Virus record (IMG/VR): IMGVR_UViG_3300009430_000004
Coordinates: 154,089 to 218,088 of that record
DNA length: 64,000 nt
Reading direction: 5' to 3' (one strand)
Within the stretch, counting starts at the first letter, position 1. Every line of letters begins with the position of its first letter. The notes below the pieces were generated by a model. That model ran no database searches. It had not been told where the DNA came from and worked only from the letters and a program-made list of their open reading frames with translations. The position numbers and the translations under genes were made by a program. Shown one piece after another: positions 7,434-59,992 of this stretch.

Positions 7434-7462
7434 AAAAAATCACTCCTTTCTAGCTATTTCTT

Positions 7463-7474
7463 TATTAAATTGTT
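7463..7474 (-). promoter_or_regulatory. Late promoter AACA-N6-TA (tail fibre operon)
   Basis: AACA ATTTAA TA. Confidence 0.7.
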
Positions 7475-7507
7475 TTTAATAACCAAAATTATTCCGAGTT
7501 AAAGGGC

Positions 7508-7557
7508 AAATGTGGGATGTAAGCAAGCTTAAAAGCAATTGCTTACATCCCATATTT
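7508..7557 (-). terminator. Intrinsic terminator, 19-bp stem
   Basis: AAATGTGGGATGTAAGCAA / TTGCTTACATCCCATATTT. Confidence 0.7.
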
Positions 7558-7563
7558 AGCATT

Positions 7564-8352
7564 TTATAACTTTCGTATATAAGTTGCACTCACAAATCCT
7601 ATACCTGACGAAATAACTGTTGTAGGCACAGGAATTGACCACCAACCATTTTGGAGGTTCATTAATTTAACTCTAGTATTCATTTCTAATTCACAGATAA
7701 CAGGGTAATTTGTGCCCCTACCTGATCTCACATTAAGCATTTTAGCAGTTGTTACTCCATATACTTCATTTGATGGAACTGCTGCTTCAGGTAATATAGC
7801 AATTCCTAAGTGGTCAAGGATACCATAAGCAATCGCAATACCCATCTTCTGTTGTTCTGGGATAGTATCCACTATCTGTTTGTCAACATCATTGTCGATG
7901 AAGGCTCCTTCAACGATAATTGCAGTCATATCAGTTTGTCTGATTACACCGTAGTAATCTGTTTTCCCATTTGTGCTTTTTTTTGAGAATGTTGGGTTAG
8001 GTCTAAAGTTTTGACCTGTTACAGTATGAACTCTTTCAACAACTTTTTTAGCTAAATCAGTGCCTTTTCCGTAGAAAATGCTATGGATAGCCTCAGCTCC
8101 GTCTCCACCACCAGCATTGTAATGGATTGAAACAAAATAGTCAGCTCCCCATTTATTAGCCATGTCGCATCTTTCTGTAAGTCCAACATACCTATCATCG
8201 CTTCGTGTTAATCCCACTGTTAACCCATGCCGAACAAGTACCTCTTTACATTTTAGTGTTGTAACAAGATTCATGTTCTTTTCAACAAGACCATTTGCTA
8301 CAGCACCAGGTTCATTTCCACCATGTCCAGCGTCTAACCATACCTTTGGCAT
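7564..8352 (-). CDS. N-acetylmuramoyl-L-alanine amidase (Amidase_3) with C-terminal SH3b
   Basis: DAGHGG..E..N, SIHYNA, IVEGAF Zn/catalytic motifs; LNVRSGRGTNY..I SH3b motif. Confidence 0.9.
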   Translation of the reverse strand: MPKVWLDAGHGGNEPGAVANGLVEKNMNLVTTLKCKEVLVRHGLTVGLTRSDDRYVGLTERCDMANKWGADYFVSIHYNAGGGDGAEAIHSIFYGKGTDLAKKVVERVHTVTGQNFRPNPTFSKKSTNGKTDYYGVIRQTDMTAIIVEGAFIDNDVDKQIVDTIPEQQKMGIAIAYGILDHLGIAILPEAAVPSNEVYGVTTAKMLNVRSGRGTNYPVICELEMNTRVKLMNLQNGWWSIPVPTTVISSGIGFVSATYIRKL

Positions 8353-8375
8353 ATTATCAGCCCCTTTCTTTTTAT

Positions 8376-8387
8376 TAATTTAATGTT
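8376..8387 (-). promoter_or_regulatory. Late promoter (amidase-SH3)
   Basis: AACA TTAAAT TA. Confidence 0.7.
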
Positions 8388-8408
8388 TGTGATATGAAAA
8401 AAATACAT

Positions 8409-8444
8409 AAAAAATAAGGAATCGTGATATAAAACACGATTCCT
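8409..8444 (-). terminator. Intrinsic terminator
   Basis: AGGAATCGTG / CACGATTCCT with A-tract. Confidence 0.75.
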
Positions 8445-8449
8445 CACCT

Positions 8450-9604
8450 TTAACCTTCTACCAATACTCTGTAGGTATTTGGTCCTACAACGCTATCATC
8501 AGCAATGTGATGATTCCATTGATATTCTTTAATTTTTCCTGCTGTAAGCGGTCCGAAACATCCATCTGGATCTGCCCCAACAGCAGTTTGAACCCATCTA
8601 ACAGCCTCTCCCCTACTACCAATTCTAAGAACTGGCATCTTAGCATAGGTACTCTTTGTTAAAGCACCAACACTACCATCAACATCAAGAAGATTTCCAT
8701 TCTTGTCTGTTATTCCAAGAGCTCTTGTTAACTCTTGGTATGCTCTAACTTTACTAGAGCCACCAGGAACAGGTTTATTTAGTTCTGCAATAGCTTCATT
8801 AAGCTTTCCTAATGTCTTAGGACCTGCAACACCATCATCTTCTCCTGCACCAAGATACTTTAATTGGAATGCTTTAACAGCAGCTTCTGTTCTTGGACCA
8901 AAATCTCCATCAGCAGATAGTTGATATCCAAGTTTAACGAGCTTTAATTGCATTTCCATAACTGTTGTACTCTTATCTCCTCTTCTGAGGCAAGTTATTC
9001 CAGGGTTTGCTTTTGGCTTCTGTACAGGAATTACTGGTGCACCATTTTGAGTAGGCATTCCAGCGGCATCCAATATGCCATGAGCTATAGCAATCCCAAA
9101 TCTTTGTTGTTCTTCAACAGTATCCACTATTTTACTATCGGCACTATCAACAAATGCTCCTTCAACAATTACAGGAGGTGCATTGTTACCTCTAATAACG
9201 CCATAATAGTCAGTTCCTCTTGAATTTAATCTTGTGTAGGTTGGCTTTGGTCTAGTATTTTGTCCTAATTCGGACACGATTCTGTTAACGATACGTGATG
9301 CTAAAATATCATCTGTCATTCCGTGGAAGATACTATGGATGGCTTCCACCCCATCCCCACCACCAGCATTGTAGTGAATGGACACAAAGAAATCAGGTCC
9401 CCAAGCATTTGACAAAGCACATCTTTCATCAAGATCGAGATAAATGTCAGTTGTTCGGGACATTCCAACAATAACACCATGTCTCTCAAGTTCTACCTTA
9501 CAAGCAATTGCTGTTGTGAGATTCATGTGTTTTTCAATTAAGTTACCAGAAACGGCACCAGGATCAGAGCCACCATGACCAGGGTCTAACCATACTTTTA
9601 GCAT
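8450..9604 (-). CDS. N-acetylmuramoyl-L-alanine amidase (Amidase_3) with three PG-binding repeats
   Basis: DPGHGGSDPGA, SIHYNA, IVEGAF; DGDFGPRTEAAVKAFQ, DGSVGALT, DGCFGPLT..IKEYQ PG_binding_1 motifs. Confidence 0.9.
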   Translation of the reverse strand: MLKVWLDPGHGGSDPGAVSGNLIEKHMNLTTAIACKVELERHGVIVGMSRTTDIYLDLDERCALSNAWGPDFFVSIHYNAGGGDGVEAIHSIFHGMTDDILASRIVNRIVSELGQNTRPKPTYTRLNSRGTDYYGVIRGNNAPPVIVEGAFVDSADSKIVDTVEEQQRFGIAIAHGILDAAGMPTQNGAPVIPVQKPKANPGITCLRRGDKSTTVMEMQLKLVKLGYQLSADGDFGPRTEAAVKAFQLKYLGAGEDDGVAGPKTLGKLNEAIAELNKPVPGGSSKVRAYQELTRALGITDKNGNLLDVDGSVGALTKSTYAKMPVLRIGSRGEAVRWVQTAVGADPDGCFGPLTAGKIKEYQWNHHIADDSVVGPNTYRVLVEG

Positions 9605-11242: not shown

Positions 11243-11278
11243 AACTTTAATATAAAACAAATTAAGAGTATATATTAT
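11243..11278 (+). promoter_or_regulatory. Early motif TATATATTAT (11269) plus AACT-N6-TA variant (11243)
   Basis: Upstream of nuclease-sbcD-dnaB operon. Confidence 0.6.
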
Positions 11279-11292
11279 ATAACCGAGGAGGG

Positions 11293-11955
11293 GTGAAAAT
11301 GTATAATAGTGGGCATACTCAGTATTTTAATAGTGATAATATAGAAGTGCCTAGTGCAACGACCGTATTAAAGATTTTAAATAAACCTGCCCTTGTTAAA
11401 TGGGCTAATTATTTAGGCTTCAAGAGACAAAATGTCGATGAAGTGTTAGATGCATCAGCTACTATTGGCACATTAGTGCATCAATTGATATATAGTTACT
11501 TAATGGATAAGTATGTTATATGGATTGGGACAAGAAAATGTGGTAAAGCTACTGCAATGATGTATATGAACAGCTTCCTTGAATGGAAAAGGACACATGA
11601 AGTGAAACCTACATTCATGGAAAAACAATTTACCAGCAAAAGATTTGGTGGTACAATAGATTTTTACGGTGAAGTCGATGGTAAAAAGACAGTATTAGAC
11701 TTCAAAACATCAAAGAAACCTTATTCGTCTATGTTCCTTCAGTTAGCAGCTTACTGTATAATGTTAGAAGAGGCTGGATATGAAGTAGAACAATTGGCGA
11801 TTATAATTATTAATAACTCAGGTTATAATGAAAAGTTTATAACAAGGGAGGAGATACAAAGGTATATTGACGTATTCATAAAACTCGTGGAAGTATTTCA
11901 TAACTGGTACGACTTGAATATAGAGCATGGATGGGGGGATATACTTGCAAAATAA
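11293..11955 (+). CDS. PD-(D/E)XK family nuclease
   Basis: GTLVH, GGTIDF, VLDFKTS, QLAAY motifs. Confidence 0.85.
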   Translation: MKMYNSGHTQYFNSDNIEVPSATTVLKILNKPALVKWANYLGFKRQNVDEVLDASATIGTLVHQLIYSYLMDKYVIWIGTRKCGKATAMMYMNSFLEWKRTHEVKPTFMEKQFTSKRFGGTIDFYGEVDGKKTVLDFKTSKKPYSSMFLQLAAYCIMLEEAGYEVEQLAIIIINNSGYNEKFITREEIQRYIDVFIKLVEVFHNWYDLNIEHGWGDILAK

Positions 11956-13132
11956 TCCGTATGTTGGAGCCATTTTCGCTGACGTTCATACAGGTGCGTT
12001 TAAACCTGTTATACTATACAATGAGTTTAAGGAAGAGGCTCTAGAATATCTAGAAGGACTAGCAATCCTTGATTTTATAGTTATTTGTGGAGATTTCTTC
12101 CACACTAAGTTATCAATGAATTCAGACCACGCTAAGTATGCATTTCAAATACTGATGAGATTATTAGACATCTGTGAGAAGAAAAATGCTAAACTTAGGA
12201 TAGTTAAAGGTACTGAAAGTCATGACAATAAACAATTAGAAATATTTGAGTCTATAATCAAAATGAGCAAGTATGACTTTAAGATTATAGACACAGTTGG
12301 AACAGAAATGTTATTTGACGATATGAAGGTTCTATATATACCAGAGGAATATGTAGAAGACAAGGATGAATATTATAAGGACTATTTTGACCAAGAATAT
12401 GATATGATATTCGGACATGGTTTAGTGTCAGAAGTTGTATTCGTAGCTTCAAGGCAGGAGAGTGAAGAAACTATGGCTAAAGCTCCTGTATTTAAATCAG
12501 AAGAATTGCTCAGAATATGCAAAGGACCTGTATTCTTTGGACATATTCATACACCTCAGGTCATTAATGATAGATTTATTTATGTTGGTTCATTTTCAAG
12601 ATGGAGTTTTGGTGAAGAAGAAGATAAAGGGTTTTATACCGTATCATATGAAACTGACAGCAGTAATTTCATGACAGAGTTTATTGTCAATAAGAAAGCG
12701 AGGAAATATGATACTATTACTATAGACTATACTTCGCCAATATTTGATAAATCTGAAACTGAACAAGTAGATTATCTAATTAAGTTAGCAAATTCTCTTG
12801 TAATTGATTATTTGAGACTTGAGATAAATATACCTGAGGAATACGACAAATCGCCATTATTGGTGAATATGATTAATGATGTCTTTAATAAATATCCAAA
12901 TATAAAGACAAAGATTAATAACAACAAGAAGCTTCGACAAAAGAAAGAAACAGAAGAAAAGATAAATCTATTATTAACACGATATGGATTTATATTCGAT
13001 AAAACGCTGAGCCATGAGGAGAAACTTTCATTGTTTATTAAAGAAAAATACAACAGAAACATTCCTGTAAATAAGATGAGACAATATCTTTATGAGCAGT
13101 TAAGAGTTAGGGGGTCTCAGCATGGTGTCTAG
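11927..13132 (+). CDS. sbcD: SbcD/Mre11-like metallophosphoesterase nuclease
   Basis: ADVH, GDFFH, GTESHD, FGH, GHIH, YVGS motifs. Confidence 0.85.
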   Translation: MDGGIYLQNNPYVGAIFADVHTGAFKPVILYNEFKEEALEYLEGLAILDFIVICGDFFHTKLSMNSDHAKYAFQILMRLLDICEKKNAKLRIVKGTESHDNKQLEIFESIIKMSKYDFKIIDTVGTEMLFDDMKVLYIPEEYVEDKDEYYKDYFDQEYDMIFGHGLVSEVVFVASRQESEETMAKAPVFKSEELLRICKGPVFFGHIHTPQVINDRFIYVGSFSRWSFGEEEDKGFYTVSYETDSSNFMTEFIVNKKARKYDTITIDYTSPIFDKSETEQVDYLIKLANSLVIDYLRLEINIPEEYDKSPLLVNMINDVFNKYPNIKTKINNNKKLRQKKETEEKINLLLTRYGFIFDKTLSHEEKLSLFIKEKYNRNIPVNKMRQYLYEQLRVRGSQHGV

Positions 13133-38183: not shown

Positions 38184-40496
38184 ATGAAAGGAGACAGGCA
38201 AATGTCAAATGTTCAACCGAAACCACAATTAAGAAAAGAAAAAGACTATATTAATACGACAACGATAAGGTTGAAAGAGACCTTATGTGAAAAAGAGGAA
38301 AAGTACCATTTTAAAGATGATATATTCGGTATGACATTACTAACGAACCCTGGATATATAAGTGCTTCAAGAAATATAATGTTTACATCACATTTGAGGC
38401 AGTTCGTTAACCTGTTGAACCCTGAGTTTCCAAAGGTGTTTACCAACTATGAAAATATAGTTGGTAAATACTCAACTGGATATTATAGGGCGAAAACAGA
38501 TTTAAAGGTAGTTGATAAAATAGCTAAGTTCGGCAACGGAGTATTGGACAATCATCTATATCTTCTATTCACATATGATGAAGAGAATGATAAATATGAT
38601 GTTATTCAGAAACGTATAGTTGAAGACTTAACAGAAAAGTTCGGGTTCCCTTACAATAATGAAGTAATGGATGCTAAGGAACCAGGAGATGAAGTAAGAG
38701 CAGGAGAGGTGTTATACAAGACACCGTCATATGATGAGGACATGAATTACTGTTATGGTAAGAATGTCAAGTTCATGTATCTGCTAGATAATGACACCAT
38801 AGAGGACGCAATAAAGTGTTCTAAGTCATTTGCAAAGTCTATGAAATCTAAGGAAGTAGAAACTGTTAAAGTGTCCCTAAATGATAACGATATATTCTGT
38901 AATTATTATGGGACAAACGAAGAGTACAAGTGCTTCCCAGATATTAATGAGTTTATAAAGGATAAGATAGTTTGTGTTAAACGAAGAATACACAACAATC
39001 AGCTTTTATATGATGTAAAGAAATCAAATCTAAGAAAAATCAATTTTATGTCAGACAGCCTATCATTCTGTGAAGGTAGAATTGTAGACATAAATATCTA
39101 TTCAAATAAACCAATAGAAGAGATAGAAGACAATAGCTTTAATAGGCAATTATTAAAATATATTAAAATGCAGAGAGAATTCTACATCAAGGTTTATGAG
39201 AGATGTAAAAAGATAATAGACTCTGGCTCAAAGTATTCCAGTGAAGTTAACTTCTACTATAAGAAAGCTAAGAACATTCTCGATGAAAAGTATAAATGGA
39301 AAGAAGAAGATAATTCAGTATTCAGTAATATGATTATTGAATTCTTAATCGAGAGAGATGTTGAACTTTCAGTGGGACAGAAGATTACAGGACGATATGG
39401 AAATAAGGGAGTAGTATCTGAAATACTTCCAGACGAGGAAATGCCGTTCTTGGAAACTGGGGAAAGAGTTGATATCATATTCAATACTCTCGGCGTTATA
39501 AACAGAACAAATTCATTCCAGTTAATGGAGCAGTCAATTAACTTTATTTGTAACAGAGTAAGGGAAAGACTGAAGATTATGAATGATTTGAAAGAGAAGG
39601 AAAAATTATTATTTAAGATAATTAATTACTTCAATGACAAGCAGGCTGATAGTCTGCATGATTACTATAAGAGATTGGCTAAAGTCGACAAAGAAGATTT
39701 CTTTGAAGATATTATAGAAAGAGGAATATTTGTTCATATCCCGCCACTATGGGAAGACAGGAGTCTATTCGATAGACTTAACGACATTTATAAAGAATTC
39801 ACATGGATTAAACCATATGATGTTTATGTCAATAGGTTTGGTAGAAAGATAAAGATGTTGAAACAGTTAATAGTCGGGGATATGTACGTTATAAAATTAA
39901 AACAAACATCAAAGAAAGGTTTCTCGGTAAGAGCAACAGGTTCTCTTAGTAAGAGAGGCGTTCCAGAGAAATCTAATAAGGCTAAAAATCATCAGGAGCT
40001 TTATTCAAGAACACCTATAAGAATAGGTATTGATGAAAATCTCAATACTGCAATTGGTGTTGAAACCGAAGAAATAGCTAAGATCCACTTATTCTATAGG
40101 TCATCAGTTATAGGAAGACGAGACCTAGGAGAAAGATTAACAACAAATATTAAGGAAGTAAAGGAATTTAAATATTCACCAGAGTTTAAGAATAGAAATG
40201 TTGAGATTCTTCAAGCTTATCTTAAAGCAATGGGTCTGAAAATAGACTTTGAAGAGGATAAGTATTTCATAGATATATTCCTAGGTAGTATGGAGGAATA
40301 TAATTATGGGGATAAAACCTTTATATGCACTAGGAGAGAGTTTGAAGATAGAAAAACTAGGATGGACGTTGAAACTGACTTCCGAGAAAAGAACTATTTC
40401 GTTGGCTCTAAGGCTGAATATGAGGAAGCTGTCGATAAAAGAGTCAATGATGTCAATTTAAGAAAGTCTAAGTATGTAATAGATGTAAAAATGTAA
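38184..40496 (+). CDS. RNA polymerase beta C-terminal half, probably non-virion RNAP
   Basis: TIEDAI, GQKITGRYGNKGVVS..LPDEEMP, VDIIFNTLGVINR, VGDMYVIKLK motifs; early motif upstream. Confidence 0.9.
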   Translation: MKGDRQMSNVQPKPQLRKEKDYINTTTIRLKETLCEKEEKYHFKDDIFGMTLLTNPGYISASRNIMFTSHLRQFVNLLNPEFPKVFTNYENIVGKYSTGYYRAKTDLKVVDKIAKFGNGVLDNHLYLLFTYDEENDKYDVIQKRIVEDLTEKFGFPYNNEVMDAKEPGDEVRAGEVLYKTPSYDEDMNYCYGKNVKFMYLLDNDTIEDAIKCSKSFAKSMKSKEVETVKVSLNDNDIFCNYYGTNEEYKCFPDINEFIKDKIVCVKRRIHNNQLLYDVKKSNLRKINFMSDSLSFCEGRIVDINIYSNKPIEEIEDNSFNRQLLKYIKMQREFYIKVYERCKKIIDSGSKYSSEVNFYYKKAKNILDEKYKWKEEDNSVFSNMIIEFLIERDVELSVGQKITGRYGNKGVVSEILPDEEMPFLETGERVDIIFNTLGVINRTNSFQLMEQSINFICNRVRERLKIMNDLKEKEKLLFKIINYFNDKQADSLHDYYKRLAKVDKEDFFEDIIERGIFVHIPPLWEDRSLFDRLNDIYKEFTWIKPYDVYVNRFGRKIKMLKQLIVGDMYVIKLKQTSKKGFSVRATGSLSKRGVPEKSNKAKNHQELYSRTPIRIGIDENLNTAIGVETEEIAKIHLFYRSSVIGRRDLGERLTTNIKEVKEFKYSPEFKNRNVEILQAYLKAMGLKIDFEEDKYFIDIFLGSMEEYNYGDKTFICTRREFEDRKTRMDVETDFREKNYFVGSKAEYEEAVDKRVNDVNLRKSKYVIDVKM

Positions 40497-50228: not shown

Positions 50229-50272
50229 AATATGAAACTTATCTTTAAGAGAGATAAGTTTCATATTTTTTT
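50229..50272 (+). terminator. Terminator containing AACT-N6-TA
   Basis: AATATGAAACTTATCT / AGATAAGTTTCATATT. Confidence 0.7.
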
Positions 50273-50289: not shown

Positions 50290-51075
50290 ATGCTTGACAT
50301 AGATATAGACAAAATAAGCAGAACGTTAATTCAACCTATTAAAGAATTAACACTAAAAATACACATAAAATTATTACAAGAGAAGGAAGGGCGTAAAGAA
50401 AACTTCCATCATTTATTTAACTTTGACGGTAATAAATACCTCAAGTTAGACTTACAGTCATTTCTCACATTAGAGATGAATGACGGGGAGTGGGCTAGAG
50501 ATAAGTCCATACTGATAGATCAAAAGAATATCTATCACATAATAAAAGGCTTTGAGACTATGATTGAGTCAATATATAACGGCGGAGTGTTTGCAGTTAA
50601 TAAAAGCGGAGAGGTTGTTATATTTTCGGACAAGATTCAAGAGCATACAGTAAAGCTATTTAATATAGGTAATAATCAGAAATTAATTCTGAAACCTGCT
50701 AAGATATTTGATGAGAACGAAGTATCATATGAAGGTGTAGTTATATTCTTTAATAAAACAGACAACTTTGTACAACTACCAATAGATGCGTTCGAGTCAT
50801 TATATTATACATTAAAACAAACCAATATATTTGTTTACTCTCAGCTTCTATTAAATTATTATATGTCATGTATTAAGGATGAGAAGATAGAGTTGAAAGA
50901 AGTTGTTAGCAAGAGTCAGGCTAAGACTCCTAAGAAGCAACATCCGTTATTTGTAGAACAAAAAGAGGAGGTTAAATCTAGTGTATTTAAGAAGGACTCA
51001 GATGAAGAGTTTTTCAACTTTAATAATGGAGGTAATAAAGATGCTGGGGTTCAACAAGAAGAGAAACCAGAATGA
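50290..51075 (+). CDS. Hypothetical protein with acidic tail (nucleic-acid binding suspected)
   Basis: 261 aa beta-rich core, DSDEEFF tail; AACT-N6-TA motif upstream. Confidence 0.6.
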   Translation: MLDIDIDKISRTLIQPIKELTLKIHIKLLQEKEGRKENFHHLFNFDGNKYLKLDLQSFLTLEMNDGEWARDKSILIDQKNIYHIIKGFETMIESIYNGGVFAVNKSGEVVIFSDKIQEHTVKLFNIGNNQKLILKPAKIFDENEVSYEGVVIFFNKTDNFVQLPIDAFESLYYTLKQTNIFVYSQLLLNYYMSCIKDEKIELKEVVSKSQAKTPKKQHPLFVEQKEEVKSSVFKKDSDEEFFNFNNGGNKDAGVQQEEKPE

Positions 51076-51280
51076 TGATGAGAAGCTCTGCACAGCAGAG
51101 TTTCTTATAACTCGGTATGAGAATTCAGAAATTGTCAAAGTGCCTATTGATGTTACTTTTGACATGGTAGAAGGAGATGATGATGAAAACTTTAAAAGAG
51201 CTTATAGGTCACTTGTAGCTTCAGATAGCTTAAGAAAGGGTGACCATATGGTAGAATTAATACGAATATATACTAAGTAA
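51041..51280 (+). CDS. Hypothetical protein
   Basis: Start moved to ATG 51041 after GGAGGT. Confidence 0.55.
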   Translation: MLGFNKKRNQNDDEKLCTAEFLITRYENSEIVKVPIDVTFDMVEGDDDENFKRAYRSLVASDSLRKGDHMVELIRIYTK

Positions 51281-51287
51281 AGGAGAG

Positions 51288-51644
51288 ATGACAATGGAAA
51301 GTAATGAATTAGTAAAATTATTTAATGAGAAGGTAGATTACCTTCTAAAGAATTCAGATTTAATGACAGTTAAAGACCATGACATCGTCGTTAAGATAGA
51401 TGGAAAAGGTGAGACTGCAACAGCTCGAAAACTAAAAGAGAAATTTATAGTCAGCACAATTAGTGAATCAATATTTATTGTCGCTAATTATGAGGTTAAT
51501 AATGACCCTAATAAATGCGATTTAATAATGACTATATCAAATTCAGGTCACACATTTGTTGCCAATATAGGCGAGTATCTTAACGCTAAGCTATTATTGG
51601 CTAAATTGCTGGATAAGGTAGAGTTGAAAAACAGAAACCTATAA
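51288..51644 (+). CDS. Hypothetical protein
   Basis: 118 aa, AAGGAG RBS. Confidence 0.6.
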   Translation: MTMESNELVKLFNEKVDYLLKNSDLMTVKDHDIVVKIDGKGETATARKLKEKFIVSTISESIFIVANYEVNNDPNKCDLIMTISNSGHTFVANIGEYLNAKLLLAKLLDKVELKNRNL

Positions 51645-51655
51645 TGCAAATTGTT

Positions 51656-51674
51656 TATATATTATATATTGGTA
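51656..51674 (+). promoter_or_regulatory. Early promoter
   Basis: TATATATTAT ATATTG GTA. Confidence 0.65.
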
Positions 51675-51690
51675 ATAATTTTGTAGAGGG

Positions 51691-52350
51691 GTGATTTGCA
51701 TGAATATAGGTGTATATACAGGAAGGCTCGTTCTCATAATGGGAGATGAGTTCTGTGAAGTTGAGCTATATCGTGAGGGGAAGAAGCTCAAAAAGGGTCT
51801 AGGGTATATAAAAGGCTCTATAGTTTATATCTATAGAGGGAAGATGGAGAAATTCAAGAAATCTGAATTGGTAGCTGGAATATATCTGGACAGGAATGAT
51901 AATTACGTATTCGTGGAACCAACAAGAGATGAAGCTATTAAATACAGCATAGATAATATATCTGAGCTAGATATAGACAAAATCTTTAATGAAGTTGGTG
52001 AAAATGAAGATGATTTTGTTCAGCCAGAAGACATCGAGATTATAAATAACAATTCGGAAGTTTATATTCCGACAATTAAGGATGATGATGACTTTTTAAA
52101 GTATATTGTCAAGAAAGTCATAATCGACAAAAAGATTAATCTGAAAAACTATAAAGATAAGTTCACAAGCCAGTATGACCTCAACAATATGAAATCAGGG
52201 TTAAATAAAGATACCAAGATGACTGTACCTAACTTTAAGAAGTGGTGTGAGGCTCTTGGTATCACTTGGGAAATGAGGATATTTGATGCTGGCGTGGATA
52301 AGTTGAATCCATTACCCGATGATATATTTATAGAAAGTGACAATTTTTAG
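51691..52350 (+). CDS. Protein with putative C-terminal XRE-like HTH
   Basis: MTVPNFKKWCEALGITWEMRI pattern; early motif upstream. Confidence 0.5.
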   Translation: MICMNIGVYTGRLVLIMGDEFCEVELYREGKKLKKGLGYIKGSIVYIYRGKMEKFKKSELVAGIYLDRNDNYVFVEPTRDEAIKYSIDNISELDIDKIFNEVGENEDDFVQPEDIEIINNNSEVYIPTIKDDDDFLKYIVKKVIIDKKINLKNYKDKFTSQYDLNNMKSGLNKDTKMTVPNFKKWCEALGITWEMRIFDAGVDKLNPLPDDIFIESDNF

Positions 52351-52370
52351 GAGGGGTGGTTAATCCGCCC

Positions 52371-52394
52371 CTCCCATATATATATATATGGGAG
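52371..52394. repeat. 24-bp perfect palindrome CTCCC(AT)7GGGAG
   Basis: Direct reading; overlaps an upstream hairpin and the downstream RBS. Confidence 0.85.
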
Positions 52395-52756
52395 ATGGGA
52401 AAATGAATGATATTAAGATAAAATTAACTAGAGATCAATTGAATAATATTATAAAATTTCTAAATACTATTATGCAGAATGATATAACATCATTCTACTT
52501 ATATCTGGATATAACACCAGATAATCCACCTACACAAGAACAGTTGGACAAACTGTATGAGTGTATTGAACGAACAGTTAAGATTTATTATCCCGAAAAT
52601 ATTTTTTCTAAATTTGAGGTTGTGTACTTAGAGCAAGGAGTTAGTGTAGATTATGATATAGATACTCCGAAGCTTGAGGCATTCCTTTCGAGGGATATTA
52701 ATAATACAAGGAAAATTTCTGATCCTAATTACTCAGCGAGTAATATACTACAATAA
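52388..52756 (+). CDS. Hypothetical protein
   Basis: 122 aa. Confidence 0.55.
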   Translation: MGDGKMNDIKIKLTRDQLNNIIKFLNTIMQNDITSFYLYLDITPDNPPTQEQLDKLYECIERTVKIYYPENIFSKFEVVYLEQGVSVDYDIDTPKLEAFLSRDINNTRKISDPNYSASNILQ

Positions 52757-52769
52757 GGGGGGTTTAATA

Positions 52770-53108
52770 ATGGAAAATCAAATTAAACAACAAGACGACA
52801 CAATACATGCAAATTTGTCTGAAAATGCATCAATTACCTTTCACATGGGGAACCCACATGTGGTCATGACTATATCTGCTGAGGGAATAATTTCCTTTCC
52901 AGATTCAATCAAGGAAGCTAATGCAGATGAGATTGCAAAGCAGGTTATAACCTTATTAGAGGATAATACTGCAACTAAAGTCGCTAATCTAAAGCAAATA
53001 CTTAGAAGTGTGGATGGAAGAAAATTTGCTGATTATGGGACAATGAATTTTGTGAAAGCTGTGTTATTTGACAAAATTTATAATTTATATATTGGGGATG
53101 GTAAGTAA
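52770..53108 (+). CDS. Hypothetical protein
   Basis: Start moved to ATG 52770 after AAGGGGGG. Confidence 0.55.
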   Translation: MENQIKQQDDTIHANLSENASITFHMGNPHVVMTISAEGIISFPDSIKEANADEIAKQVITLLEDNTATKVANLKQILRSVDGRKFADYGTMNFVKAVLFDKIYNLYIGDGK

Positions 53109-53109
53109 T

Positions 53110-53913
53110 ATGGAGCGTTTAACATTTTTCGGAACAGGGTGTTTTAATAATACCAAACTTGGAAATAACAGTGGTTTCTTTATGGTAGAAGATAATTTAT
53201 TTATCATTGACTGCGGAGAGACAGTTTTTCATAGTATACTAAAATCAGGCGTTCTTAAATATGCCAAGGACATTACGGTTATGGTAACACATGGACATGG
53301 AGACCATGTAGGTAGCTTCACATCATTTGCTTTCCATGTGTTCTATTTCATGAATAAAAAGGTTACATTGGTTACAAATAATCAGGACGATATTGTTGGG
53401 GTGTTTAACAGACAGATGGGTAACATAACAAAGTATGTTAAGCTAAAGAGTACCAACAAAGATGGCTCAGTTTCTTTTAATATTGGATGTACTGATGTGA
53501 ATATACAGTATGTAAAAGTTGACCATGTTGACTACTTAAAGAGTTATGGACTAATAGTAAATATTAATAATCCTTTATCAGGAAAGGATAGTTTCTATTA
53601 TAGTGGTGATAGTAGCGATATTAAGCCATTTATATTAAGAAAGTTTGAAAGGGGAGAAATAGAATATATTTATCAAGACGTTACATTTAAGGAATATGAA
53701 AATCAACCTCATATGTCAGTATATAAGTTGATGGAAAAAATTCCTGCTGAAAAGAGAGATAAAGTATTCTGTATGCATTTAGATCCTGATTTTGATATTC
53801 AGATTGCAATGAATCTTGGATTCTCTATACCTCCCCGTACTACAGAAGGAGGCGTTATAAGATGTCAAAGTATATCAGGACAGATTTTAGAAACCATCCT
53901 ATACTATTCGTAG
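53110..53913 (+). CDS. MBL-fold phosphodiesterase (Apyc1/RNase Z-like)
   Basis: GTG, NNS, IDCG, THGHGDH, HV..SY, YSGD, QD, H, MH metal-ligand series. Confidence 0.8.
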   Translation: MERLTFFGTGCFNNTKLGNNSGFFMVEDNLFIIDCGETVFHSILKSGVLKYAKDITVMVTHGHGDHVGSFTSFAFHVFYFMNKKVTLVTNNQDDIVGVFNRQMGNITKYVKLKSTNKDGSVSFNIGCTDVNIQYVKVDHVDYLKSYGLIVNINNPLSGKDSFYYSGDSSDIKPFILRKFERGEIEYIYQDVTFKEYENQPHMSVYKLMEKIPAEKRDKVFCMHLDPDFDIQIAMNLGFSIPPRTTEGGVIRCQSISGQILETILYYS

Positions 53914-54449
53914 ATAGGAGATTGTCTAAAGAGGAGAAAAAACCAGGTTTATACTATTATGCTATAAGACACGATGATGAACAGTGGCTTCCTGCAACAA
54001 TAGAAGAAGCTGTTCTCGTCAATCACTATGGGACAATCATCAGTAAAGAAAAGCTAGATTTAGATGTTCCTGAGTGGAGAGGTGGATATTATATCAACCT
54101 CAGTGAAGAAGAATCAGATGAATTTCTATATGTCAACAAGTTGGTGACATTGGATGAATATTTGGAGGAAGTTGGCTACGGTGTTAAGTGCAGAGTGTTT
54201 CTAGGTATACCATCAATACGAATTCATGGGAAAGAATATAAGGTAAGTATTTTTGATAGAAAAGGTTATTTCAACAAAGGTACTGCCTATATTTTTAATG
54301 ATTGGGTTTTACCATATAAAGGGACTTTACAAGAAACTGTAGGGAAATACTTGGAGCCAGGGGTTTATAAACATCATGAACATATCTTCCTTCTCTTTCC
54401 AATTTATGATGAGGAACATGTTTATAATATTGGGAATCTGGAGGAATGA
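53862..54449 (+). CDS. LPD28-like domain protein
   Basis: LFVDRR..GLYYYAIR.DD...PATIE..VLVNHYGTII motif. Confidence 0.65.
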   Translation: MSKYIRTDFRNHPILFVDRRLSKEEKKPGLYYYAIRHDDEQWLPATIEEAVLVNHYGTIISKEKLDLDVPEWRGGYYINLSEEESDEFLYVNKLVTLDEYLEEVGYGVKCRVFLGIPSIRIHGKEYKVSIFDRKGYFNKGTAYIFNDWVLPYKGTLQETVGKYLEPGVYKHHEHIFLLFPIYDEEHVYNIGNLEE

Positions 54450-54727
54450 TTATTATGGCAAGGTGGATGAAGGGGGTACTCCTTCACACTGACGTAGGTG
54501 TGAAGTTGTTGTGCTTAAAGGGAAATGGTAGACCTTGGACTAAAGAAGAGTGTTTCAGATATTGCAATTTAAGACAAGACGAGTTTGACAATAAAGTGAG
54601 GTCTAACAGATTAGTATTAAAGGCATCATTGATAGATGCGACAAATAAAAAAGGTCGGGACTGGTATAAAGATGAGAATAACTTTAAAGAAGTATCAGTA
54701 TCTATCGACTATAACAGAATGCGGTAA
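54446..54727 (+). CDS. Hypothetical protein
   Basis: 93 aa, GGAGG RBS. Confidence 0.55.
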   Translation: MIIMARWMKGVLLHTDVGVKLLCLKGNGRPWTKEECFRYCNLRQDEFDNKVRSNRLVLKASLIDATNKKGRDWYKDENNFKEVSVSIDYNRMR

Positions 54728-54740
54728 CGAGTGTTTTTTA

Positions 54741-54778
54741 ATTCCTATTACAACAAGATTGTAATAGGAATATTTTTT
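54741..54778 (+). terminator. Terminator containing late promoter
   Basis: TTCCTATTACA / TGTAATAGGAA. Confidence 0.7.
54752..54763 (+). promoter_or_regulatory. Late-type promoter inside terminator hairpin
   Basis: AACA AGATTG TA. Confidence 0.55.
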
Positions 54779-54803
54779 ATATTTTTTTAGGAGGTATTTT
54801 ATA

Positions 54804-55130
54804 ATGAATAAAAAAGAAGGAATAACAAAGATATTTAATGATTATGTAGAAAAAGGAGGTTGTGTGATGGATTTAATACCAAAGATTGAAGCTTTATACA
54901 ACGATGATGACATAACATTCAAGATTACTAATATAATAAAAGAAAAAACTATGTTCGGTTCAACAACTATAGAAGCCGAGTGTGTTCAGGATGGGGTAAC
55001 TGTTATAGTTACAATGCCGTATGATGTGGCTAATGATAATAAAAAGATAAAAGAGGTTTTGAAGCAGGCATATATGGCAAAACCTAAGCTCACTGAACAA
55101 GAAACTCTTAATGTAGGAGATATACTCTAA
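54804..55130 (+). CDS. Hypothetical protein
   Basis: 108 aa, AGGAGG RBS. Confidence 0.6.
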   Translation: MNKKEGITKIFNDYVEKGGCVMDLIPKIEALYNDDDITFKITNIIKEKTMFGSTTIEAECVQDGVTVIVTMPYDVANDNKKIKEVLKQAYMAKPKLTEQETLNVGDIL

Positions 55131-55160
55131 TACTATCAATCCGAGGATTGGGGTGAAAAG

Positions 55161-57830
55161 ATGAAGATAAAATATTTGTTATTAAAGAATTTTGCTAGTA
55201 TTTATACAGCAATGAAGAAAAAGGTAGTAGAAATAGACTTTAAAAAGTCTAAGAACAGAGTAATCCTATTAGTAGGAGATAATGGTACTGGTAAAACATC
55301 TTTATTGAGTGCTCTTCACCCATTTGCTTATCCAGGGAATATGGATGTGCGAGATACTGGAGAATTGATTTTAGATGAGGTTGATGGGTATAAAGAGGTA
55401 CATCTTGAAGATGACGGTACACTATATGTAATAAAACATCATTACTTATATACTAAGAATGGTAGAAATGTTAAAAGTTATATATCAAAAGATGGCACAG
55501 AAATGAATCCTAATGGAAATGTGACATCATTTAAAGAAATAATTTTATCAGAACTATCTCTGGAAATTGATTTCCTCAAGTTAATTAGGCTTGGTTCTAA
55601 TGTTACTAACTTTATAGATATGAAAGCATCTGAGCGTAAGAGTTTTACTTCAGAATTATTATCTGAGGTTGATGTGTATAGTAAGCTATATAAGAAGATT
55701 AATGAGGACAGTAGAGTTTTAAAGACTATGATGAAATCAGTAACTGATAAGCTAGAGAAGTTAAAAATCCTTGATGAAAAGGATGTCATAATAGTAATAG
55801 AATTATTAGAAGATAAGTTGACTTCGTTGAAAGAAGAGAAAGATTCGTACAATAGTCAAATTTGGTCTATAAATGGTTCTATTGGTACATTAATACCTGA
55901 AGGGGTTGAATCTTTCCTATATTCAATCAGGACAGATGAAGAATCATACAATGACATGGTTAGGGAGATAAAGACAAAGCAGAATAAGATAGATAAGATA
56001 CCAATGATTATAATGGGAAGTATTGAGGAATCTATATCCTCCGTAATGACTGAAATAACTAATAATGAAAATAAGATAGCTATGAACACAAATATGATAA
56101 ACTTCTACTTCACACAGTTGAATAATCTATATACTCAGAAGGAAGAGAGAGAAAATAATCTGAAGTATATAACTTCAGATTTAGAGTATACTAAGTTAAA
56201 CGACCTATATCTCGGTTTACATCGTGAGAAAGAGAAGTTGGATAAGCACTATAAAAATTATGAGCCTAAGTGTAGCAAAGATGATATGTTGTCGGCACTT
56301 AGACTTATGCAGGAAATAGAGCAGTTTGTGTCAAACATTCATACATTTAATCATAATGCTGTAACTAATGTTGTTAATCATATGCTGAATGATGAGGATG
56401 TAAATGATAATGTTCGACGTGAGATATCTAGTATTGATGATAAGATTCAGAAGAATAACTTCGAACTAATGAAGTTAAATAACATAGTTGGCAAGAAAGA
56501 CGGAGTATATGTACTATTCAAACCAACAGACTGTAAGTCCAGTAATTGCCCATATGTTAAGTTCTATGATGACCATGTTGATGCTAAGAAAGATTCTCCT
56601 GTTGAGAAACTTACTGCTGAAATAAAGAAACTTGAGAATAAACGAGAATTCTTTGAGTCTATGTATGATATTAATAAAAATATAGACTATATACTTCTCT
56701 TAATAAAATCAAATAATAAATTAATTGAGAAGTTACCTGAAGATTTCTTCAGTATAAAAAGAATTCTTAATTCAATTAAAGATTGTATACCCTTCTTTGA
56801 TGAAGATAATATCACTAATTATATAGCGGTGCTTGAGGAGTATGAGCATTATTTATCTATCAAGGAAAAGATAAAGGACATTAAGAAGGAATTATCTTTC
56901 ATTGAGAAGAATGCCACATCTCTTGCTACAATGCAGAAAGAGCTAGATGTGTTAGATAATGATATTTATAAACTTAATAATGACATTAACTCATTAAAGA
57001 AGGTCAACGAAATGTTAAGTGTGAGAAACGATAAATTATCAGACTTGAGAGAAGTTTATGAAGATTATAAAGATGGTCTTGATGAAATAAAGGACTTGAG
57101 TGATAAGGCTTCTAAGCTATTTGACAGTTTGGTAGAGCGTAGAAAGATACAGAAAAAGATAGATGAGTATATTGTCATCAAAAAGGATTATGAACGTAAA
57201 ATCTCAGTATTGGACGTTCAAATAAAGCAAGTTGACGAAGAGATAACAAACAATAAATTCAAATTAAGAGAGTTTGAGGCTCTTAAAGAAGAAAAAGCTA
57301 TCATCGAAGAACAATTCGATGATATAGACACTATAAAAGAAGCATTGTCATCTAATAAGGGAATGCCACTACTATTCATTCAGCTATACTTAAGGAAAAC
57401 TAAAGCTATTGTTAATGAGTTATTGAGTGAGTTATTCGGTGGTGAACTGGAAATAGATGATTTTGACATAAATGATAGAGAATTTAAAATACCTTATATC
57501 AAGAATGGTATTAGAGTTTCAGATATCATATCTTGTTCACAAGGTGAGAGAAGCTTTATATCTTTGGCAATATCATTTGCTCTAGTAAAGCAATCAATAG
57601 AGCGATATAATATCATGCTCTTAGATGAGATTGACTCAACTCTCGATATGACTAATAGACCAATATTCATAAAGATATTGGAAGAACAGTTAAAAGCAAT
57701 AGGCTCTGAACAGGTATTCTTGATAACACATAACAACATGTTTGATAATTACCCTGTTGACTTAATTATGACATCAGACATTGAAATAGATAATTACAAG
57801 AATACTAATGTTATCTTCAGGGCAGCATAA
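55161..57830 (+). CDS. sbcC: SbcC/Rad50-like SMC ATPase
   Basis: GDNGTGKTS, long coiled coil with central C-x4-C, CSQGE signature, LLDEID, ITH. Confidence 0.9.
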   Translation: MKIKYLLLKNFASIYTAMKKKVVEIDFKKSKNRVILLVGDNGTGKTSLLSALHPFAYPGNMDVRDTGELILDEVDGYKEVHLEDDGTLYVIKHHYLYTKNGRNVKSYISKDGTEMNPNGNVTSFKEIILSELSLEIDFLKLIRLGSNVTNFIDMKASERKSFTSELLSEVDVYSKLYKKINEDSRVLKTMMKSVTDKLEKLKILDEKDVIIVIELLEDKLTSLKEEKDSYNSQIWSINGSIGTLIPEGVESFLYSIRTDEESYNDMVREIKTKQNKIDKIPMIIMGSIEESISSVMTEITNNENKIAMNTNMINFYFTQLNNLYTQKEERENNLKYITSDLEYTKLNDLYLGLHREKEKLDKHYKNYEPKCSKDDMLSALRLMQEIEQFVSNIHTFNHNAVTNVVNHMLNDEDVNDNVRREISSIDDKIQKNNFELMKLNNIVGKKDGVYVLFKPTDCKSSNCPYVKFYDDHVDAKKDSPVEKLTAEIKKLENKREFFESMYDINKNIDYILLLIKSNNKLIEKLPEDFFSIKRILNSIKDCIPFFDEDNITNYIAVLEEYEHYLSIKEKIKDIKKELSFIEKNATSLATMQKELDVLDNDIYKLNNDINSLKKVNEMLSVRNDKLSDLREVYEDYKDGLDEIKDLSDKASKLFDSLVERRKIQKKIDEYIVIKKDYERKISVLDVQIKQVDEEITNNKFKLREFEALKEEKAIIEEQFDDIDTIKEALSSNKGMPLLFIQLYLRKTKAIVNELLSELFGGELEIDDFDINDREFKIPYIKNGIRVSDIISCSQGERSFISLAISFALVKQSIERYNIMLLDEIDSTLDMTNRPIFIKILEEQLKAIGSEQVFLITHNNMFDNYPVDLIMTSDIEIDNYKNTNVIFRAA

Positions 57831-58810: not shown

Positions 58811-59992
58811 TTAATCATCGTCATCTTCATCAGGAGATACTACTTCAATTACTTTGTAACTTCTTCCTCTTTCATCAGTAGCGTATCTTCCATCATCACT
58901 AAATTTAACTCTACCTATATCTTTCTTTCTTGGTAGAGGGTAGTCAAATACCTGTTGATTATTTTTATCTAATGCAACAAATTCCCAGTCTCCTGTGTCT
59001 ATCCATTTCTTAACGACAACTCTAACACCTCTATTTTCATATTCGATGTATTTACTTCCCTCTTCGCTTCTAAATGGATTTTCTACACTACTGAGTCTTT
59101 CTTCTATCAGACGGGAATATCTGTCCATTTCGATGTCAGACATACCATCATCCTTACTCTTTTCAATTTGTTCAACCAATGAATCAACTTCATCATCATC
59201 GTCATCATTATTTCTAGAACCAAACTCTTTAACAAAGTTGTTTCTTCCATACTTAAGAACATTCTTAAGATATGTAGTTGCAATCATTTCTGATGTAGCT
59301 CCACCTTGAGCGTTAGCTGCATTTGTCTTACCATCAGCCTTGATTTTAAGGTCTGCAATAGTTTTCTTAATAGATGATATTTCCTTGATAATACTAAGCT
59401 TGTTTTGCTTAGATGAAAGTATGGACATAATAAGGTCATTAACATACTTACTAACGCCCCTTGTCTTACTAGCCTCTAACCCCTCGTATTTCTTATCAAG
59501 TCTTTTACCAAACTTATTAACTTCATCAAGAAGATTGTATAAAAGAGTTAATTCTTCAGCAAACTCTTTCTTATAAGGATTTTCTTCCTTCTTAAGTTTG
59601 TCATAACTCTTTTTCTGTTCATCTATGATCCCGTCATCTATACCATCTTCACTGTCTTCTCTAAATATCTCATCTATATCAATGAGATTAGCCGCACTGG
59701 TAGCATCATAATCGTCATCATTGGAACCGTCTTCATTGGTGGATACGTTTCCAATTTCACCTGCCGACATGAACTCCAGGTCACTGAATTCCTTATTCTT
59801 CTTCTTTTTTTTCTTGTCCTTTTTCTTCTTAGATAAAGAAGATAAAGTAAATACTTCCTCTTTCTCCTCAGGCTCTTTTACCTTAGGAGGTGAAGGTATT
59901 GTACTTCTCAGAGTCTTAATCTCCGAGATAAGGCTATCTTTCTTAATAGGCATATTAATATTAATAGTGTACTGGTCGCTCATAATAAACAC
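58811..59992 (-). CDS. Late coiled-coil protein with poly-Lys and poly-Asp tracts
   Basis: 393 aa, AGGAGG RBS, late promoter 60002. Confidence 0.65.
   Translation of the reverse strand: MFIMSDQYTININMPIKKDSLISEIKTLRSTIPSPPKVKEPEEKEEVFTLSSLSKKKKDKKKKKKNKEFSDLEFMSAGEIGNVSTNEDGSNDDDYDATSAANLIDIDEIFREDSEDGIDDGIIDEQKKSYDKLKKEENPYKKEFAEELTLLYNLLDEVNKFGKRLDKKYEGLEASKTRGVSKYVNDLIMSILSSKQNKLSIIKEISSIKKTIADLKIKADGKTNAANAQGGATSEMIATTYLKNVLKYGRNNFVKEFGSRNNDDDDDEVDSLVEQIEKSKDDGMSDIEMDRYSRLIEERLSSVENPFRSEEGSKYIEYENRGVRVVVKKWIDTGDWEFVALDKNNQQVFDYPLPRKKDIGRVKFSDDGRYATDERGRSYKVIEVVSPDEDDDD

Follow-up and report, generated by a model that had tools for sequence, protein, structure and literature searches.

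Apyc1 (Pfam family PF23023; gp147 of phage SBSphiJ; PDB 7T28, 7U2R and 7U2S) is a metallo-beta-lactamase (MBL)-fold phosphodiesterase that cleaves cyclic CMP and cyclic UMP (cCMP and cUMP), turnover by the SBSphiJ enzyme being complete in 20 min at about 10 nM. In the SBSphiJ enzyme, mutation of the metal-binding residues H64, H66, D68 and H69 abolishes activity (PMC9117128), hydrolysis of cCMP needs E74 and Y112, both contributed by the other protomer, and an Apyc1-specific extended loop reaches into the nucleotide pocket (Hobbs et al., PMC9117128). YhfI, a loop-less MBL phosphodiesterase, strongly prefers cyclic AMP and cyclic GMP (cAMP and cGMP), with about 100-fold more enzyme needed for cCMP and cUMP (PMC9117128 and its source data). 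The MBL core, the HxHxDH motif, accessory His/Asp residues and a dimeric architecture are also found in RNase Z/ELAC (TIGR02651; PDB 1Y44 and 2CBN). Here we analyse an MBL-fold phosphodiesterase gene at 53110-53913 (+) of a 64,000-nucleotide (nt) stretch of IMG/VR record IMGVR_UViG_3300009430_000004 (positions 154,089 to 218,088; hereafter the window), which makes up the final 64 kb of a viral record that is 218 kb long and bears direct terminal repeats. An earlier note had taken its product, hereafter the MBL protein, for an Apyc1-like phosphodiesterase and a candidate enzyme against Pycsar defence. We place the MBL protein in a large sister family of Apyc1 with a short loop (the PHROG 392/7FCT type); it is without two features that Apyc1 needs for cCMP/cUMP cleavage, the extended loop and the Glu supplied in trans. 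Our best reading, to which we assign a probability of roughly 0.6, is that of a catalytically competent, homodimeric, binuclear-metal (Zn/Mn-type) MBL phosphodiesterase of the short-loop family that acts on some nucleotide substrate, a specific anti-Pycsar activity not being supported.

The gene encodes 267 amino acids (aa) plus a stop (protein P0001; ATG 53110, stop 53911-53913). This ATG was preferred to an upstream TTG at 53068 because homologues share the same N-terminus, and the 3′ end overlaps the next open reading frame (ORF; start 53862) by 52 nt. Every motif that the earlier note had listed was found in the translation, in the same order: GTG..K..NNS (residues 8-21), IDCG (33-36), THGHGDH (60-66), HV..SY (139-146), FYYSGD (162-167), YQD (188-190), H201 and IPAEKRDKVFCMH (211-223). 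With an intact ORF, a full binuclear-metal site and a confidently predicted MBL fold, that observation of a real gene bearing these motifs is confirmed, and the database matches given below put it well outside what chance would produce. In the family alignment D34, H61, H63, D65, H66, H139, D167 and H223 are invariant (53 of 53 members) and H201, Y188 and D190 nearly so; because the metal-site residues are invariant across these members, the enzyme looks catalytically competent. The position of YQD is presumably that of the HEAT motif in RNase Z.

Comparison with canonical Apyc1 gave a different picture outside the metal site. The MBL protein is 23% identical to SBSphiJ Apyc1, and the position of E74, a Glu in every one of the 15 canonical Apyc1 proteins, is occupied by Thr71; among 78 aligned family rows it is Gly in 57, Ala in 8, Ser in 6, Pro in 4 and Thr in 2. 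The E75 position is Ser (S72), the pair T71/S72 aligning with Gly-Asp in 7FCT, and the invariant W102 of Apyc1 is replaced by Phe in the MBL protein and by Leu in most short-loop members. The loop segment spans 19-24 residues (median 22) in the 15 canonical proteins against 10-17 (median 10) in the short-loop family, with 11 residues in the MBL protein, 10 each in the homologues of phages Madawaska and SBSphiC, and 13 in RNase Z. Tyr112 of SBSphiJ Apyc1, which is Tyr in 5 of the 15 canonical members, falls in the loop region that is deleted in the MBL protein. We judged membership on these features because deep tree topology is weak with only three groups, and by the defining features tested the MBL protein is not a canonical Apyc1. 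What stands of the Apyc1-like description is the MBL fold, the metal site and the rank of Apyc1 as the nearest characterised family. The same observations cut both ways for the proposal that the protein is a genuine anti-Pycsar enzyme, degrading cCMP and cUMP (and other cyclic nucleoside monophosphates, cNMPs) fast enough to block activation of the Pycsar effector. The closeness of Apyc1 in sequence and fold and the intact metal site are in its favour, while the replacement of a Glu required for cCMP hydrolysis, the loss of the loop proposed to hold small pyrimidine cNMPs, and the preference of loop-less YhfI for cAMP and cGMP all stand against it.

Profile and sequence searches locate the MBL protein in the short-loop family. 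The Apyc1 model PF23023 gave 34.4 bits, below its 50-bit gathering cut-off (27.6 bits in a six-frame search), a further point against anti-Pycsar activity, and the RNase Z model fell far under its own cut-off; the generic model PF12706 gave 33.5 bits, above its cut-off of 27. Genuine Apyc1 proteins score 205.4 (SBSphiJ gp147, in LT960608), 209 (KKP_4047) and 254.6 bits (Paenibacillus medicaginis) with PF23023, and short-loop relatives score 19-58 bits, straddling the cut-off (AR9 gp022, 50; Bastille gp115, 35). Among PHROGs the match is phrog_392, ‘metal-dependent hydrolase’ (E=1.6e-25). A sequence search of solved structures returned PDB 7FCT as best (E=3.6e-40), followed by three Apyc1 structures (1e-8 to 1e-7); RNase Z was reached at E=2.5e-3, over the N-terminal 70 residues only. 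The family profile in turn scores 304 bits on 7FCT, 88-108 on Apyc1 over its full length, 35-50 on the N-terminal half of ELAC/RNase Z and 39 on about 160 residues of YhfI. An exhaustive search yielded 897 representative clusters with E<=1e-3, of which 501 reach E<=1e-10; most have 230-250 aa. At 35-40% identity the named relatives are annotated ‘MBL fold metallo-hydrolase’ and come from Clostridium, Niameybacter and Oceanirhabdus, among others, to which a scan of species genomes added homologues from Pelosinus, Acetivibrio, Lysinibacillus, Niallia, Shouchella and Paenibacillus. Patterns for that scan came from a 7-row alignment, the 53-row alignment being too diverse for patterns, and a single-protein query against genome contigs did not find related loci.

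The MBL protein thus matches both the family model and 7FCT significantly along the full length, and it has an 11-residue loop, Thr71 in place of Glu, and YQD. The family so delimited takes in PHROG 392, 7FCT, the single MBL genes of Bastille-like, AR9/PBS1-like, Tsamsa-like and jumbo Staphylococcus phages, and many chromosomal genes of Bacillota. 7FCT itself, the ‘metallo-beta-lactamase MBLBt2’, is a crystal structure released in 2023 with no published function; compared with it, the MBL protein adds a disordered tail of 27 residues. Literature searches on 7FCT/MBLBt2 found nothing relevant, and a search for Apyc2 or Apyc1-like subfamilies added nothing. The MBL protein is, then, a new member of a family that is itself known but has no characterised function, and a divergent one, with no more than 41% identity to any known sequence.

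A careful maximum-likelihood tree (53 rows, LG+G4) recovered RNase Z (support 100/100), canonical Apyc1 (98/96) and the short-loop family (90/90) as monophyletic groups. In this tree the MBL protein lies outside the Apyc1 clade, grouping with two metagenomic proteins, P0002 and P0003 (100/91), and the short-loop clade takes in AR9, Bastille, SBSphiC and Madawaska. We did not rely on the topology of a quick 98-row tree, for which a constrained search reached a better likelihood, a sign of under-optimisation. No YhfI-type outgroup was found through NF041851 in five genomes; Bacillus subtilis YhfI (PDB 6KNS/6KNT), a class II MBL cNMP phosphodiesterase with 14-17% identity to the MBL protein, enters the structure and profile comparisons only. 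Canonical Apyc1 may itself have evolved inside the short-loop family. P. medicaginis carries three paralogues: besides an RNase Z there are a canonical Apyc1, at 255 bits, and a short-loop gene, at 58 bits, the short-loop gene and RNase Z lying on one contig about 22 kb apart.

The AlphaFold2 model of the MBL protein, built on the 53-row alignment, has a mean predicted local distance difference test (pLDDT) score of 92.4 and a predicted template modelling (TM) score of 0.89, with disorder confined to the last 27 residues. Foldseek ranked 7FCT first (TM 0.82/0.92), then Apyc1 (0.69-0.78), YhfI (0.60-0.72) and RNase Z (about 0.6). Prediction of the homodimer gave an interface score (ipSAE) of 0.70 in three runs against 0.32 for the best control, with partner pLDDT of at least 91 and contact agreement of at least 95%; the mark applied to this score is reached by 21 of 30 solved homodimers and by none of 23 monomers. 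The predicted interface includes residues 62-65, 68-76 and 94-105, and residues 71/72 contact residues 63/64 of the partner, which is the trans geometry of Apyc1 without the carboxylate and, as geometry, a point in favour of anti-Pycsar activity. In the mechanism that these features suggest, two metal ions held by D34, H61, H63, D65, H66, H139, D167 and H223 would activate a water molecule for cleavage of a phosphodiester, with D190 and H201 probably assisting, and two active sites would sit at the dimer interface, each facing the 68-76 helix of the partner. Because the capping loop is absent the pocket should be more open than that of Apyc1, which makes it probable that the enzyme acts on a nucleotide phosphodiester different from the small pyrimidine cNMPs, or on a wider range than these.

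Two readings attached to homologues by name fit these data poorly. RNase Z, the transfer RNA (tRNA) 3′-processing endonuclease, is how many phage homologues are annotated (GenBank labels include ‘RNaseZ’ and ‘ribonuclease Z’), and it is the top NCBIfam match of the MBL protein, though a weak one (38.1 bits over residues 4-143). The equivalog cut-off of that model, TIGR02651, is 292.95, and the echo is uninformative because genuine Apyc1 gets similar weak scores. The earlier note had named clustering with RNase Z and the RNase Z flexible arm as signs by which the two could be told apart, and both point away from RNase Z: the RNase Z proteins form their own clade, and the arm is absent, the stretch from the motif IV Asp to the following conserved Asp being 22 residues long where five RNase Z proteins have 44-46. 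No RNase Z exosite element was seen in the AlphaFold2 model, all five genomes that have a short-loop gene also carry a true RNase Z, and the 218-kb phage has 0 tRNA genes whose maturation might call for such an enzyme. The MBL protein is not RNase Z, and that explanation is effectively refuted. Hydrolysis of beta-lactams, as the title of 7FCT would imply and as weak N-terminal class B matches (E 0.006-0.85) might hint, is less probable still and close to negligible: the class B PDB matches cover residues 10-74 only, the shared HxHxDH region, the MBL protein reaches no class B NCBIfam model, the fold comparison puts phosphodiesterases first, and a phage would have no evident benefit from such an activity.

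Published biochemistry of relatives bears directly on anti-Pycsar activity. The gene underlying one match with 32% identity to the MBL protein encodes QQO92874.1 of Madawaska (‘RNaseZ-like protein’), which Tesson et al. (2024) purified and found to cleave cNMPs weakly or not at all (PMC11370490, PMC11724313). This protein, from an AR9-like jumbo phage, falls within the short-loop family in both trees and shares with the family a loop of only 10 residues and a Gly in place of E74; it differs from the MBL protein in its long branch and extra insertions. The short-loop gene of Bacillus phage SBSphiC is likewise intact (317 aa, 10-residue loop, Gly at the E74 position), and SBSphiC was among the 57 phages of the lysate screen of Hobbs et al., for which the paper credits cCMP/cUMP degradation only to the SBSphiJ family (PMC9117128). 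The SBSphiC gene (1489-2442 of its locus, in a record without annotation) also has a C-terminal extension of about 75 residues relative to the other aligned members. Both results argue against anti-Pycsar activity, as does the finding that one bacterium has a short-loop paralogue alongside canonical Apyc1, since the two are then hardly redundant. Given the Thr at the E74 position, the missing loop and these findings on relatives, the interpretation in the earlier note is only partly supported: a specific anti-Pycsar (cCMP/cUMP) activity is not, and we regard it as distinctly unlikely.

The distribution of the two types in phages can be read either way. A tblastn probe that detects both types found 256 places in 256 phage records, and the SBSphiJ Apyc1 probe found 276 in 276; in neither the 256 nor the 276 records was there a phage genome with both a canonical Apyc1 and the short-loop type, an exclusion that speaks for anti-Pycsar activity. 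Of the 276 records about 35 reach 60% identity to SBSphiJ Apyc1 and the remaining 241 fall short of it, and the Bacillus cereus-group and Staphylococcus phage proteins checked among the 241 (Bastille and Madawaska) are of the short-loop type. That an SBSphiJ Apyc1-seeded search reaches short-loop phage proteins has been counted on the same side; it also means that sets of ‘Apyc1 homologues’ defined by BLAST would include the short-loop family. The genes differ in setting: in SBSphiJ and KKP_4047 the Apyc1 locus follows ribonucleotide reductase genes, and in Bastille the short-loop gene follows a sigma factor gene.

Several points weigh against the best reading given above. The closest assayed family member, that of Madawaska, is only 32% identical to the MBL protein; its assay contained 1 mM Mg2+ without Mn2+, the protein required 500 mM NaCl and glycerol, and the negative result may be technical. 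The argument from SBSphiC is indirect. Hobbs et al. validated ten ‘Apyc1 homologues’ (PMC9117128), and some of the ten might be short-loop proteins. The pattern of one type per phage could reflect functional substitution, equally with a lineage effect. In approximately unbiased (AU) tests a place for the MBL protein, or for its trio, beside canonical Apyc1 is not rejected (p 0.85 for the quick tree, 0.36 for the careful tree), which permits the sister position to Apyc1 that would favour anti-Pycsar activity; the MBL lineage could therefore be the short-loop branch nearest Apyc1. Lastly, the passing dimer score may reflect the model's memory of solved relatives.

The features of the locus are collected in the table below.

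Table. Sequence features of the MBL gene and its transcription unit (positions in the window)
Feature	Position	Strand	Remarks
Promoter-like motif GTTTATATATTAT	51653-51665	+	Head of the six-gene unit; about 35 nt before ATG 51700
Putative transcription unit	51700-54727	+	216-, 122- and 113-aa genes, MBL gene (fourth), LPD28 gene, 93-aa gene; tight/overlapping ORFs
Shine-Dalgarno-like GGGGA	53094-53098	+	11 nt before ATG; read from sequence
D34 codon, MBL motif I Asp	53209-53211	+	53/53 family; also all Apyc1 and RNase Z rows
H61-G-H63-G-D65-H66, HxHxDH metal-binding motif II	53290-53307	+	Invariant; aligns with SBSphiJ Apyc1 H64/H66/D68/H69
T71-S72, positions of Apyc1 E74-E75	53320-53325	+	Catalytic carboxylate absent; alignment and dimer model
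Residues 99-109, short segment replacing the Apyc1-specific nucleotide-binding loop	53404-53436	+	Alignment
H139 codon, motif III His	53524-53526	+	Invariant
D167 codon, motif IV bridging Asp (FYYSGD)	53608-53610	+	Invariant
Y188-Q189-D190 (YQD)	53671-53679	+	Alignment; Apyc1 counterpart is xHD
H201 codon, counterpart of the Apyc1 ‘VHAS’/RNase Z ‘HST’ His	53710-53712	+	Nearly invariant; alignment
H223 codon, motif V His (CMH)	53776-53778	+	Invariant
C-terminal 27 residues (241-267)	53830-53910	+	Lineage-specific, no counterpart in homologues; modelled disordered, pLDDT 40-76
LPD28-domain gene	53862-54449	+	PF18843, 67.7 bits; large polyvalent protein-associated domain 28
Terminator-like hairpin (13 pairs) with T-run	54741-54771	+	Closes the unit; sequence

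The window carries genes for an RNA polymerase beta-like subunit (38184-40496 (+); phrog_3295, 5.7e-114), RNase H, a nicotinamide adenine dinucleotide (NAD)-dependent ligase, a polymerase-like protein, SbcC and a DNA polymerase around the MBL gene, and an exonuclease, SbcD and a DnaB-like helicase further upstream. Because of the multisubunit RNA polymerase gene and the best phage relatives, the source appears to be a jumbo phage like AR9 and PBS1, with a host among the low-GC Bacillota. A nucleotide search with a 4-kb region in the phage collection gave no match, nor was there a megablast hit in 50,697 phage records; a second IMG/VR record, at 100% identity, is the one close sequenced relative. 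The remaining four genes of the transcription unit had no family match, and PADLOC returned chance-level matches only (LmuA, 14 bits; SAVED_TIR, 13.5 bits, for the 93-aa neighbour).

The motif at the head of the unit recurs across the window. The form AAATATATATTAT has six exact copies (15814, 23261, 29602, 33633, 40575 and 44867) against 0.08 expected, and its core ATATATATTAT, with at most one mismatch, has 39 matches against 14.6 expected (for example at 11268, 38145, 42426, 43141, 51655, 57864, 58512 and 60046), many of the 39 lying shortly 5′ of plus-strand gene starts. As the window motif is one base off the annotated early promoters of Bacillus phage AR9 (AARTTTATATTAT), it is probably a phage promoter for an AR9-type RNA polymerase; a scan for sigma-70 promoters stayed at chance level (67 found, 58 expected). 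The MBL gene is thus probably expressed with the early/replication genes, to judge from these motifs. Of the cluster of small early genes described in the earlier note, the six packed genes and the AR9-early-like motif at their head hold up, early expression itself being only plausible.

Three divergent relatives (at L108 4364-5113, L106 775-1509 and L107 1071-1805, compared with window 50290-57830) keep the order 261-aa gene, 219-aa gene, MBL gene, 93-aa gene and SbcC, with small genes varying in between. Over this shared stretch the MBL proteins are 39-40% identical against 47-64% for their neighbours, which suggests that the MBL gene evolves faster than the genes around it. In L108 the LPD28 slot, which is thus variable, holds a Peptidase_S8 gene. 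Between the 80-aa and 261-aa genes lies a near-perfect hairpin (50229-50267; 16-18 pairs) with T-runs on both strands, resembling a bidirectional terminator, and a 393-aa gene (58811-59992 (-); phrog_27823) interrupts the plus-strand replication block at a point where the local GC skew reverses.

This setting invites the thought that the MBL protein is a nucleic-acid-directed phosphodiesterase, processing RNA or DNA ends or turning over host nucleic acid together with the replication/recombination module. It lies in a co-directional block with RNase H, the NAD-dependent ligase, the polymerase-like gene, SbcC and the DNA polymerase, its place upstream of SbcC is kept in the three relatives, and the AR9 and Madawaska homologues lie near topoisomerase II/gyrase genes; the RNase Z/RNase J group of MBL enzymes is also the next structural neighbour after Apyc1, and a pocket without the capping loop should be more open. 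Against this, the protein carries neither a beta-CASP domain nor an exosite nor any other appendage for nucleic-acid binding, the SbcC association is limited to a small lineage from which Bastille and AR9 differ, the canonical SbcD partner is present elsewhere in the window, and the bacterial members have no conserved neighbours in nucleic-acid metabolism. We consider this reading possible, though on balance rather improbable. A more specific version, in which the MBL protein would replace SbcD as the nuclease partner of SbcC, is ruled out by the canonical SbcD-like gene (11927-13132; phrog_100, 2.9e-40). That gene and the SbcC-like gene (55161-57830) lie about 42 kb apart rather than side by side. 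In both AR9 and Madawaska the short-loop MBL gene is a few genes from the topoisomerase II/gyrase subunit genes.

Across 27 bacterial loci no neighbour of the short-loop gene was conserved, and neither cyclases nor defence genes occurred nearby. The commonest neighbours were an ABC ATPase (8 of 27 loci) and Spo0A (7 of 27), and the Oceanirhabdus copy has an ordinary chromosomal setting. Where the gene adjoins spo0A (for example at 6803-9210 of locus L026), spoIVB is also present in four of the seven loci; this is a core sporulation locus and not a mobile or defence context.

For the phage gene, an accessory, host-directed role, possibly the degradation of a nucleotide signal, fits its probable expression with early/replication genes and its faster evolution. 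One form of such a role would make the short-loop family a distinct counter-defence enzyme that destroys a nucleotide immune signal other than cCMP or cUMP; a cyclic oligonucleotide would be one candidate, or some further phosphodiester messenger that the pocket, opened by the lack of a capping loop, could accommodate. The family is found in single copy in about 240 large Bacillus and Staphylococcus phages, never with canonical Apyc1, and in the jumbo-phage lineage it is kept yet fast-evolving. This proposal stands for us on a level with action on nucleic acids, tentative and on the improbable side, and what probability remains is spread over other small-molecule phosphodiesters.

Our data suggest that the label ‘Apyc1’ is unsafe for the short-loop family, on grounds of sequence, structure and the limited published biochemistry. 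Annotation by homology (BLAST with SBSphiJ Apyc1, sub-threshold Pfam matches and probably anti-defence finders) merges the two, and the merged label would attribute anti-Pycsar activity to this jumbo phage and to about 240 large phages of Bacillota; sorting the short-loop family from Apyc1 therefore matters for correct counts of anti-defence genes. The substrate matters too, in a family so widespread and with a structure already solved. Should that substrate prove to be another immune signal, the family would represent a new counter-defence activity; should its role be housekeeping turnover of nucleotides, existing ‘Apyc1’ annotations should be narrowed.

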